Shown piece after piece: positions 22,891-27,591 of a stretch of 64,000 bases of DNA (within the stretch, counting starts at the first letter, position 1; every line of letters starts with the position of its first letter). The position numbers were made by a program, and so were the translations under genes. The stretch lies in assembly GCA_040357565.1 (NCBI GenBank), contig JBDODJ010000035.1, one strand, 5' to 3'. This DNA comes from Cercozoa sp. M6MM (taxonomy: Eukaryota; Protista; Endomyxa: Ascetosporea). The notes below the pieces were generated by a model, which saw nothing but the letters and a program-made list of their open reading frames with translations, was not told where the DNA came from and searched no databases.

Positions 22891-24180
22891 CGTCAGTTAG
22901 TTACGAAACTTGTCGTCAGATAATTTAACAAATGTATCGTACACTGGCAGCTTCACGGCAGGTGTTTCTAGTCAAAAATTTGAGTCACTCTACGATTGCT
23001 TCAAACCCACGTCAGTAAGCGCCTCTGCTGTCGGTGGTTCCGTTCCCCAGTCTGTATGGCCTGTGGAGGGCTCCTGTTTTTCTCGTCCAACACCGATCGT
23101 TCCTCCAGCAGCAGCCAGAATTTGCAGTGCTCTTTTTGGAAGTGAGTCAATCAAAAGACGTCTACGACGTGAAGTCCGGCACAACATAGAGCAAGTCGCA
23201 TGTTGGGTGGCCAACAAACAATCCCCTTGTCCAAGGGGGAGCTACAGCTACACTGAAGCCCGCTGGACTGCAGTGTTGCACCACATGCACCGTATTGGCA
23301 GTGCAGTCATTTTTCGCTCTCGAGATCACCAGGACCGTTTAGCATCAATCCGCCAACGCAGCACCGGCCAACACGGTGTGACGCCGTCGATCGAGCTGCT
23401 GCACCTTCACAGAGAAGCAGTAAAGTCAACAGAAAGGTGCTTCTTGAACCCTAATGCAAGGTCAACGGCGACCACAATTAGATGATGTCAACGATCGCCG
23501 GATCAGAGGTGTGAGTCACGAGCTCTCACGGGCAACCTGCTTCGCCGTTTGTTTGACTTGCTTTGCGCGCGCCGTGGCTTGACTGTGCACTGGTGCGTTC
23601 TCTCGCTCTTCGCTGCGGCAGCTGCGCGGTGCTCGCCAGTCGCTGTTGTTTGTGATGCTGTTGTTTTTTCTTGTGTTTGCTTTCCGATCGCCCAGTTGCT
23701 GCTCCGTTTCCCTGGTATCGATTGTTGCCCGTGCTTAAACAACAACAAAGGAAACTTTGTGCGTTAGACCTAGTTGTGATGGTTGATGGTGCGCTTTTGT
23801 GGGCGGATCAACCAAAGTCATCATCCGGTCATCGGTTGACTTAAGGCACCTTTTTGTCATCTTTTTTTTTAAACCGGTGTGTATGGTCTAACAAGTTTCA
23901 ATCGTAGTGCGTGCTTTGTTTCCTGAGGCTGGAGGCGTCCGATCATTTTTTATTCTTTTGCTATTCCGGAGCGCTGGATTGCGCCCACAAAACAGAAACC
24001 CTCTGCAATTTGCCTCCCGAGCACCATTGTCCCGAATATTATTGATTCACACGGCTGTGTGTTGGTAGGGCACACTGGCCGTCACGTGGCAAATAGGGAA
24101 GCACTGGAACCTTTGTGCTGAAGCCAGGTCTGGCGCCTTCTCGATTTAACAGGAGAACCCCACAAACCCGGATTATTGTG

Positions 24181-26344
24181 ATGTCTAAGCGTCTCAAGAA
24201 GTTCTTTGCCGCCAAGGCGGGTGCGTTTTTTCTTGGGTCCAGTGTGTGTGTGTGTGTGTTTTTTTTTGTTTTTGTTTTAAGATGCGTCTTGTTGTTTCCT
24301 TTGTTTAGCTGGCACCAAATTTGGCCGCAACCAGATGGAGGCTCACCTGGGCGAGTTCGAAGAGCGTCTGCTCAATGCTGTACCGTTTTACTTGGGCACG
24401 TGTTTGCTCGGTCCCAATTTTTACCATTTGGGGTGGTGGCTTGTGCAGTTCTGCGAGTTCGTCGAGCACATGGACGGCAAGGATATGGCAGAGAAGCTGA
24501 AGAAGTACCTGTTCAAGCTCGCGGCCAAGATTGGCGTGTTTGTCGACGGCGGTGACATCTCGCCGCAGCAGCTAGACGTGCTGGCGCCGGCACTGCAGAC
24601 CATCGCGACCGAGATCACCAAGAAGGAGATCGACGTCGTTGCTGTCATGGGCGCCCTCGGCGAGGTGTGCTTGTTTCTGCGGGGATGTGTCTCGTGTCAC
24701 ACATACATACATACACACACACATCCATGTGCAAAGGTCAAGACGGCACTGCGCTCGATGCTCGAGCCGCTGGTGACAGGCAAGTCGTGCGAGCGTCTCG
24801 ATGAGATCTACGCCTACGTGGCCAGCGCTCAGCGCATCTCGGCACTCAGTTTCGGCACCGAGCAGACGCAGAAGGCCATCGAGGTCAAGCAGGTATGTTC
24901 TCTTGTACACACACCTGGGCGGTGGCCATTGCAGTGCTGATGTTACCCCTTGTTGTGTGCGTGTACCACAGGTGCTCGTGTCGGTGCTGTCGGGCCTCAA
25001 GGTCAAGCCGAACTTTGCCTCGCAGTACGTCGAGACCAAGAAGGCGCGCGCGCGCAGCAAGCAGCTCGACGACCAGATCGAGGCCGACATGTACCGCGAG
25101 GCACTCAACTTCAAGGTGCGTTATCCTACCCGCTGTGTGCCAATGTTTTTATGTGTTTATCCCCTCGTGCAGGTGCTGCTGCTGGGCGCCGGCGAGTCAG
25201 GCAAGTCGACGGTGATGTCGCAGCTGCGTAACATCCACAAGGTGAAGGAGGCGCTGAGTCCCGACGAGGTCGCCTTCTACGTCGACGTGCTGCACAACAA
25301 CACGATCGAGTCGATGCACTGCATCCTGGAGCACTTCATCACGATGAATGAGGAGGTGCTCGACGCCATCGATGTCGACGTAGCCTAGCTCCTTCCCTCC
25401 CCCTCCCCTGCACCTTTGACGGCACTTGCCTTGACACTGTCACCTTTCTGCTTGGGTGCAGGTGACGCCGGCCGACATGGAGTGCTCTCTTCAGGACGAG
25501 ACGTCGCGCGACTACGCATGCCGCATCATGTGTCTCAAGAAGATCAATCACACGCTGTCGCAGGAGGAGGCCGACATGATCTACCACCTGTCGCAGGACG
25601 CCGAGATCCAGAGCGCCATCCGCCACCAGACGTTCTACATCCCGGACTCGGCCGAGTACTACTTCGCCAACGTGCGTCGCTTCGTGTCGGCCGACTTCTC
25701 TCCGAGCGACGAGGACGTCACCATGGCCAGAATACGGACCACGGTACCCATTGCCCCTCCCTTCCCTTGTTACTGTGATGTGATTCGGTTGGACAGGGCG
25801 TGCGCACGGCCAAGCTGGAGATTCCGCCGGTGCAGTACTCGTTCGTGGACGTGGGTGGTCAGCGTACCGAGCGTAAGAAGTGGATCAACTTCTTCGACAA
25901 CGTGTCGGCCATCTTCTTTGTCGTCAACCTCTCGGGCTACAACAAGATCACGTTCGAGGACAAGACGCAGAATCGCATGCACGAGTCGCTCGAGTTGTTC
26001 GCCAAGACGGCGTCGCTCGAGGTGTTCGAGAACACGCCGATCTTTTTGTTCCTCAACAAGAAGGACCTGTTCCGCGGCATGATCGAGCACAAGAACATCG
26101 ACGGCTGCTTCCCGGACTACAAGGGTCCGGCCGACTACGAGTCCTGCATCGAGCACATCCAGCAGGCCTTCTCCGATGCCATGCCGGCCGGCCGAGAGGT
26201 GCGCCACCACTTTGTCGTGGCGGCGTGCTACAAGGCCGACGTCAAGAACGCCTTCATGGAGGCTATCAAGATGCTCAAGCACGACAACCAGGACGGTGCG
26301 TTGCCTGCTGTGTTTCTCTTGTGTGTGTGTGTATGTGTGTATGT

Positions 26345-26397
<53 letters not shown>

Positions 26398-26464
26398 GAC
26401 ACTGTGCCGTGTGTGAGCAGTGATCCGAGAAGCTGTCAAGAAGCTTGAAGCCGTGGAGGCTTAA
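24181..26464 (+). CDS. Heterotrimeric G-protein alpha subunit with an N-terminal TNFAIP8/TIPE-like domain (9 exons)
   Basis: G1 LLLGAGESGKST, switch I ARIRTTG, G3 DVGGQRTERKKW and G4 FLNKKD are present. About 175 aa of helical N-terminal extension are joined in frame through GT-AG introns. Stop TAA at 26462-26464. Confidence 0.92.
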
Positions 26465-26727
26465 GCGTCGCTGCGGCGACCTCTCTTCTCGCGCCGCGCC
26501 CGTGCGGCCCTATGTTTGCTCGTTTTGCTTCCTGACACCGCTCTTGCTCCTTCTTCTCCTCGCACGCGTCTCTTTGATACGGGAATGCCACGTGTCGCGC
26601 GCTGAAACAACTACACGAGCACACCATTGACACCCACACACGCACATATTCACACACTCACATCGCCTTCTCACTTATACATGAGATTACCCCCGCCGTC
26701 ATAGACACTCACATTCGCACATTTTCA

Positions 26728-26776
<49 letters not shown>

Positions 26777-26786
26777 NNNNNNNNNN

Positions 26787-26837
<51 letters not shown>

Positions 26838-27591
26838 ACATCATTCACACACACATGCTCGACTTTTGTTTCCCTCATTCTACGCGCGGCTCCGCTTGCC
26901 TGCCTTGGCTTTGCCGCACCATTGAGATCCGCTTGCACACACCTCTTTTATTTACTGTACTATGCTACGCGGGATGACCTCGATGTAAACCGGTGCGTCA
27001 GAGTCATGATCGATGGACCGTTTTTTGTTAGTTGCCTTGTCCACTGGTAGTAAAAGTACCCCGAGTCGGCTGTTTCGTCGAGATTGTGATGTGCTTGAAC
27101 GGCCCTCCAGTAAGCTGCACTGTATCCAAAAGCTTCTCATCTGTTGTCGAAACAATACAGTATTGTGTACGGTCGGGTAATCCCAGTAGCAGGTCGAACT
27201 GGGAGTCTGAGTCATACGAATAATACAACGCAGGTTATACACCGCATACTAAATACTGCCGGTCCCGCAGCAGCGTCAGAGAAAAGACACCAAGAAATTG
27301 ACAGTCCGCTGTCGTTCGGACTTTTGACCGAGAAAGTGTAAGACACTGGGACTCAACAGGTTTCAAGACGCTCCCGGGCAGGCGTAAAACGAATCTTTAT
27401 TGATCTGACTGTCCGCTTGGGACGACCCGACGCACGCCTGGTGCTACCATCAAGTGTCTCAGTCTCAGATTTCCCAAAGTGTACGCATCTAGCCACAATT
27501 TTGTTTTTCTGGGTGAGTTTCTACGGGAGTGCTTCTTCTTTTTCCGTTCCTGGCGGCAGCGAACGAGTTCAGGCGAACGTGAGAGCAGAAG

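Follow-up and report, generated by a model that had tools for sequence, protein, structure and literature searches.

In the TIPE proteins, lipid acyl chains are held in a cavity, and a basic alpha-0 helix together with basic residues at the cavity entrance (H76, R77 and K93 in human TNFAIP8) binds the phosphoinositide head groups (bioRxiv 10.1101/2021.03.26.437243). TNFAIP8 itself has been reported to bind both G-alpha-i and phosphoinositides (bioRxiv 10.1101/2021.03.26.437243). The other closely comparable system is Gip1 of Dictyostelium discoideum (PDB 5Z1N and 5Z39), in which a domain of TIPE fold binds G-gamma by its geranylgeranyl group and retains the heterotrimer as a cytosolic complex (PMC6219514). 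The present study concerns a 64,000-nucleotide stretch of contig JBDODJ010000035.1 from Cercozoa sp. M6MM, referred to as the window, in which positions 24181–26464 of the plus strand form one gene, whose product is, we are confident, a real fusion of a TIPE-family domain with a G-alpha subunit. The source organism, to which the name Lemnamoeba sinaloensis has recently been given, belongs to the Apofilosa (Rhizaria) and is a marine, amphizoic amoeba. Whether TIPE-fold cavities are occupied by free lipid second messengers or by lipid groups on signalling proteins is a matter of debate, and Dictyostelium Gip1 is, to our knowledge, the one case in which it is understood how heterotrimeric G proteins are moved between the cytosol and the membrane.

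The spliced translation of the gene is 100% identical to the public protein MES1909193.1 (552 aa, hereafter P0001), which was deposited without a name as "hypothetical protein MHM6MM_001975" and is recorded under NCBI, not UniRef. Single exons, the open read-through frame 24311–24892 and P0001 served as queries; exons were joined only for the identity check and the comparison of splicing. In P0001, about 175 helical residues stand before the N-terminal helix of G-alpha. Pfam places PF05527 (TNFAIP8/TIPE) at residues 18–146 with an E-value of 1.1e-9 and 38.8 bits, against a cut-off of 22.5, and gives no other family up to residue 180. On its own, the unspliced frame 24311–24892 also exceeds the cut-off (29.5 bits). 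PF00503 (G-alpha) follows at residues 188–528 with 293.7 bits, a match that spans both the Ras-like and the helical domain. Judged by sequence, P0001 is a G-alpha, and under the Pfam criterion it counts as a member of the TNFAIP8/TIPE family as well. A sequence-only reading of this DNA had assigned the domain to TIPE (DUF758) from blocks aligned by eye; the Pfam match upholds that assignment, and the same blocks appear in the HMMER alignment to TIPE1. In the two orthologues introduced below, the match falls on the same profile region at scores below the cut-off (18.8 bits for P0004 and 16.5 for P0005).

The relationship of the domain to the animal TIPEs is one of low identity and is visible to profile methods only. 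A profile of three rows (A3), built from a paralogue on another contig and the read-through frame of the window, was run against all PDB sequences. Five of its seven best matches were TIPE1 8gyn (E 1e-3), Gip1 5z1n (5e-3), TIPE2 3f4m (6e-3), TNFAIP8 5jxd (0.013) and TIPE3 4q9v (0.022), the remaining two being globins that are reached through the C-terminal part of the paralogue. These profiles give good support to homology between the N-domain and the TIPE/Gip1 family, and place the domain equally far from Gip1 and from the animal TIPEs. Searches of the PDB with single sequences gave weak results, the E-values for TIPE3 being 0.69 and 0.15. When the unspliced frame of the N-domain was used in an exhaustive search of representatives, only the query protein and the paralogue were matched, and word-indexed searches with the N-domains of P0001 and P0004 matched the queries alone, so the family is either small or too divergent for these methods. 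A search of the ESM Atlas returned generic helical neighbours only.

The full-length protein was modelled by AlphaFold2 (AF2) from 79 alignment rows, with a mean predicted local distance difference test score (pLDDT) of 82.7 and a predicted template modelling score (pTM) of 0.66. The model contains eight helices in residues 3–168, at pLDDT 64–82 over residues 1–120 and lower at 121–150, followed by a long helix at residues 176–205 that is the alpha-N helix of G-alpha and precedes beta-1. Fold searches with this model returned G-alpha and other GTPase chains, so that they are no test of the N-domain. The N-domain alone was modelled poorly (mean pLDDT 45.6) from a read-through query that included two intron-coded loops and had six alignment rows. 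With this poor model, the Foldseek list was headed by TNFAIP8, with TIPE1 in fourth and TIPE3 in fifth place, at E 0.5–1.1. These E-values and the weak single-sequence search (TIPE3 at 0.69) can be cited in favor of an artefact or chance, in which a generic helical bundle happens to resemble TIPE or two genes have been merged by the predictor. Against a chance resemblance, two paralogues each exceed the PF05527 cut-off at E of about 1e-9, and TIPE-fold entries lead the non-globin matches of A3 in the PDB.

Merging of two genes meets with further objections. Exons 4 and 5 are joined in phase 0 across a GT–AG intron of 79 nt, and a gap of this size is much too small to hold both a terminator and a promoter, which argues for a single gene. 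No in-frame ATG yielding a separate G-alpha with a full alpha-N helix was seen in the gene's translation; the sole in-frame Met inside exon 5 would give a G-alpha with 9 residues ahead of beta-1. The fusion also recurs in contiguous, full-length form in two other sources. In a whole-protein search, two relatives aligned over 97–98% of P0001, N-domain included. P0004 (539 aa, EukProt EP01083) is from the foraminifer Nonionella stella, and P0005 (542 aa) lies on a Logan contig of 1794 nt, hence in an essentially uninterrupted open reading frame. Among the three fusion proteins, identity is 42–45% in the G-alpha part and 22–26% in the N-domain, and the interdomain junction P-x-F-x-[ST]-x-Y is kept in all three. 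Merged genes and chance TIPE similarity were rejected on the 79-nt phase-0 intron, the full-length orthologues and the PF05527 and profile matches, and an artefact of either kind is very improbable. The claim of a TIPE-like domain in frame with a complete G-alpha thus holds, as the translation is that of MES1909193.1 and the arrangement is conserved in Nonionella stella and in the Logan-contig relative.

When 115 G-alpha domains were placed in a maximum-likelihood tree, the G-alpha parts of the three fusion proteins grouped as one clade with a support of 98 in the Shimodaira–Hasegawa-like approximate likelihood-ratio test (SH-aLRT). This clade is sister (96) to canonical G-alphas of the same organisms and of other Rhizaria, including P0008 of M6MM, P0009 of Nonionella and P0040 of Bonamia, an exact placement that is subject to the long branches of the fusion proteins. 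The simplest reading of these sequences would be one fusion event before the split of Apofilosa and Foraminifera. The fusion G-alpha is, on present sequences, a paralogue so far found only in Rhizaria.

The G-alpha part retains all the GTPase motifs: GAGESGKST at residues 214–222, Arg368, Thr371, Gln394 within DVGGQR, NKKD at residues 459–462 and Ala515. Arg368, Thr371, Gln394 and Ala515 are taken by us to correspond to R178, T181, Q204 and A326 of Gi-alpha-1. Across 79 homologues the motif columns are invariant or nearly so. Switch II of P0001 is near the family consensus and the alpha-N helix is retained. With the catalytic elements, switch II and alpha-N all kept, GDP/GTP cycling and pairing with G-beta-gamma are expected to be retained. 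The G5 region reads A-A-C in P0001 versus A-A-R or S-A-R in the rest of the clade. Among named proteins, the nearest relatives of the G-alpha part are the dictyostelid "G-alpha-8" proteins. The G-alpha family of M6MM is a large one: PF00503 is above its cut-off at about fifteen or more loci, on contigs C25, C28, C96, C70, C360, C270, C21, C16, C38 (two loci), C13, C6, C213, C127, C2 and others. Another kind of extension was seen in P0019–P0021 (656–662 aa, metagenome proteins from ENA), which are canonical G-alphas that start with Met-Gly and carry about 300 C-terminal residues without a Pfam match.

N-terminal acylation, on Gly2 and/or a nearby Cys, is typical of the G-alpha family, although it is not strictly defining. 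Of the 122 G-alpha homologues fetched, 89 start with Met-Gly, and 67 of those 89 also have a Cys in residues 3–6. The sister paralogues keep both sites, as seen in the starts MGGVICK of P0008 and MGLQICR of P0009. The three fusion proteins start with MSKR (P0001) and with MSAI and MNPL (the orthologues), hence have no Gly2, and no conserved Cys was found near their start or in their linker. The absence of a Gly2/Cys3 site, already pointed out for P0001 in the sequence-only reading, is therefore a feature of the orthologues also.

The reading we favor is that the TIPE-like module stands in for N-terminal acylation and anchors the protein to the membrane reversibly, in a lipid-dependent way; it is put forward tentatively, at somewhat less than an even chance. 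By this mechanism, a TIPE/Gip1-family domain of about 170 residues, placed directly before alpha-N, would take the place of the Gly2/Cys acylation signal. With its basic first helix, the domain would bind a membrane lipid, most plausibly an acidic phospholipid or a phosphoinositide, as TNFAIP8/TIPE proteins do. The lipid-bound N-domain would then give G-alpha a membrane attachment that is reversible and dependent on lipid composition. In all four rhizarian TIPE-like proteins, the first 22 residues contain 4–7 Lys/Arg and no Asp or Glu, with 7 Lys/Arg in P0001. A hydrophobic cavity, lipid binding and a role of the N-domain in localisation are what we infer for P0001, and it is plausible that the N-domain would make the GTPase phosphoinositide-regulated or replace its lipid anchor. 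Two points weigh against the anchor. The TIPE fold of Gip1 binds a prenyl group attached to a protein instead of a membrane lipid (PMC6219514), and the splice junctions of the gene rest on the public funannotate model (PMC11069148) and on homology.

A second use of the same module was found within the M6MM genome. A search of the whole assembly with PF05527 gave a single further locus, on contig C12 (66797–70012), and none beyond it. The encoded paralogue, MHM6MM_000992 (P0002/P0003), matches PF05527 at 35–39 bits (39.0 for P0003; E about 1e-9), and its N-module is 33% identical to the N-domain of P0001 over 172 residues, the basic first helix included. Residues 200–318 of the paralogue match the single-domain globins 3s1i and 3ubc (E 2e-3). 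TIPE joined to globin is another unusual architecture. None of the intron positions is clearly shared between the fusion gene and the paralogue. The N-domain of P0001 is nearer to this globin-fused paralogue (33%) than to the corresponding domains of P0004 and P0005 (22–24%), in a comparison that is unrooted and holds four sequences. These identities would fit with gene-to-gene copying of the module in the M6MM lineage or with much faster evolution in the lineages of the foraminifer and of P0005. The reuse of a TIPE-like module by rhizarian amoebae on another protein, a globin, suggests a general device for lipid-dependent targeting.

Alternatively, the fusion could work as a built-in Gip1. 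The TIPE-like pocket would receive the prenyl moiety of its G-gamma partner, so that the GDP-bound heterotrimer is soluble in the cytosol with no exposed lipid; activation or subunit dissociation would free the prenyl group, and G-beta-gamma, perhaps together with the emptied G-alpha, would go to the membrane. The geometry is favorable, because the N-terminus of G-alpha adjoins the prenylated C-terminus of G-gamma in heterotrimer structures. However, the same module with its basic first helix is also found on a globin-like protein, for which no connection with G-beta-gamma is known. In addition, P0001 has no pleckstrin homology (PH) domain by Pfam, and its similarity to Gip1 is not above that to TIPE1–3. 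A Pfam search of the genome for G-gamma was without a match, but so were the controls, and the search is hence uninformative. We regard this explanation as possible yet unlikely, and capture of the G-gamma prenyl group in cis by the fused pocket, giving a self-solubilising heterotrimer with Gip1 built into G-alpha, as rather doubtful. If it were true, it would imply, together with Gip1 in Amoebozoa and the link between TNFAIP8 and G-alpha-i in animals, that the TIPE fold has served since ancient times, and perhaps ancestrally, to handle G-protein lipids across eukaryotic supergroups. The membrane anchor is preferred over a built-in Gip1 because the same module serves a globin-like protein unrelated to G-beta-gamma.

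The N-domain may also act through protein contacts, as a tethered effector or regulator that couples the state of G-alpha to phosphoinositide or Rho signalling or that auto-regulates nucleotide exchange. Contacts of this kind have been reported between TIPE proteins and Rac/Rho GTPases and between TNFAIP8 and activated G-alpha-i. TNFAIP8 is reported to inhibit Rho GTPases, and an earlier report of its binding to G-alpha-i has been cited (bioRxiv 10.1101/2021.03.26.437243). The P-x-F-x-[ST]-x-Y junction, conserved in 3/3 fusions, likewise hints at a fixed interdomain geometry. Nevertheless, the full model, with a pTM of only 0.66, is no evidence of an interdomain contact. The fast evolution of the N-domain (22–26% identity versus 42–45% for the G-alpha part) would also be uncommon at an intramolecular interface whose two sides co-evolve tightly. 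Such a tethered regulator is improbable in our estimate.

The gene consists of nine exons and eight introns by a three-frame reading of 23800–26900. An in-frame TAG lies 5′ of the start codon, at 24094, and the TAA stop occupies 26462–26464. All eight introns are GT..AG and are 53–125 nt long. The GC content at third codon positions (GC3) is 0.86 in exons 1–5 and 0.90 in exons 6–9, and that of the introns is 0.50 overall. The clean GT–AG introns and similar GC3-rich codon usage noted before are hence confirmed, and one count is amended: between 24220 and 25172 there are not four introns but five, of which four interrupt the TIPE-like part and the fifth falls within the alpha-N helix. The public gene model was produced by funannotate with transcriptome reads used as input (PMC11069148), and a transcriptome of M6MM exists (SRX22918777; PMC13746701).

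All nine exons lie on the plus strand. Exon 1 (24181–24220) encodes residues 1–13 and one further base; it carries the start codon as well as the basic helix of the N-terminus, the equivalent of alpha-0, with no Gly2/Cys3. Exon 2 (24309–24379) encodes residues 14–37 of the TIPE-like domain. Residues 38–109, the TIPE-like core, are encoded by exon 3 (24449–24664), which alone scores 21.4 bits against PF05527 (E 2.6e-4) and whose product aligns with residues 48–87 of TIPE3 4q9v. Exon 4 (24737–24892; residues 110–161) adds the later TIPE-like helices with the conserved L-x-G-x-[ST]-x-x-R-L block, where LVTGKSCERL is aligned opposite HLTAKSHARIN of TIPE1. The last helix of the N-domain, the P-x-F-x-[ST]-x-Y junction and the alpha-N helix of G-alpha are carried by exon 5 (24972–25115; residues 162–209). 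Beta-1 and the P-loop GAGESGKST are encoded by exon 6 (25173–25379; residues 210–278), together with the first part of the helical domain; alone, this exon gives 45.1 bits against PF00503. The helical domain continues in exon 7 (25462–25743; residues 279–372), which also holds switch I, including the catalytic Arg368 and Thr371. Exon 8 (25797–26295; residues 373–538) holds switch II with DVGGQR/Gln394, NKKD at 459–462, G5 Ala515 and alpha-5, and by itself scores 169.4 bits against PF00503; exon 9 (26421–26464) supplies residues 539–552 and the TAA.

Two of the introns could be read through. Introns 2 (24380–24448, 69 nt) and 3 (24665–24736, 72 nt) are multiples of three without an in-frame stop, so that 24311–24892 is one open stretch of 194 codons, and retention of either would add 23–24 residues with the frame kept. 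The segments coded by both introns are missing from the orthologues P0004 and P0005, and that of intron 2 is also missing from the paralogue protein. Introns 2 and 3 are confirmed because both orthologues are without the segments they encode. The exon 6/7 junction is less secure. Here the public model holds about 14–19 helical-domain residues that are lacking in every aligned homologue, and the pLDDT of the full-length model is below 50 at residues 275–279. An alternative donor GT at 25356 (exon end 25355) and an alternative acceptor AG at 25493–25494 (exon start 25495) are both in phase 0, and use of the two together would remove 19 residues and give the length of the homologues. The insertion may thus be a splice-site error of the public model.

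(TG)n/(CA)n microsatellites occur at 24245–24262 in intron 1, at 26320–26397 in intron 8 and at 26730–26838 just 3′ of the gene, the last containing an assembly gap (N run 26778–26787). The M6MM genome is described as having a very high load of simple repeats (PMC13746701), with which the long microsatellites of this gene agree.

No description of a TIPE and G-alpha architecture was found in the literature, and both M6MM genome papers are silent on the fusion, which agrees with the sequence-only reading in treating the architecture as undescribed. That reading had also proposed the fusion as a Rosetta-stone link between TIPE and G-alpha. The fusion is indeed conserved in Rhizaria; the link, however, was already documented through Gip1 (PMC6219514), which had been missed. 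The fusion adds to the existing idea of TIPE proteins in heterotrimeric G-protein signalling and does not found it, since Gip1 and the connection between TNFAIP8 and G-alpha-i were known. A conserved fusion to a G-alpha without an anchor brings to this idea a Rosetta-stone argument for joint function, from a third eukaryotic supergroup. As a single polypeptide, it also offers a compact system in which to tell whether the ligand is a phosphoinositide or the prenyl group of G-gamma.

Among canonical G-alphas, the closest are those of the G-alpha-8-like group (Dictyostelium G-alpha-8, P0026, and the rhizarian P0008 and P0009). P0001 differs from canonical G-alphas in having no Gly2/Cys site, an extra N-domain of 175 residues, A-A-C at G5 and, in the public model, the helical-domain insertion of 14–19 residues. 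The paralogue MHM6MM_000992 has the same TIPE-like N-module, yet its partner is globin-like and not a G-alpha. The N-domain passes the Pfam threshold of TNFAIP8 and TIPE1–3 (PF05527; 5JXD, 8GYN, 3F4M and 4Q9V), and like them it is predicted to have a basic helix at its start and some six or seven further helices. Whereas TIPE1–3 stand alone as proteins of about 160–200 aa, here the domain is the N-terminal module of a 552-aa GTPase. In Gip1, a TIPE-fold helical domain acts on heterotrimeric G proteins by way of a lipid; similarly, a TIPE-like domain is tied to a G-alpha in P0001, and the sequence similarity of the two domains is weak but detectable (profile E 5e-3). Gip1 is a separate protein with a PH and a TIPE-like domain that binds G-beta-gamma in trans, while in P0001 the TIPE-like domain is N-terminal, covalently joined to G-alpha and without a PH domain. 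Given the missing PH domain and the different architecture, the fusion protein does not qualify as an orthologue of Gip1. Nevertheless, in both systems the domain would act at the place where the N-terminus of G-alpha meets the C-terminus of G-gamma.

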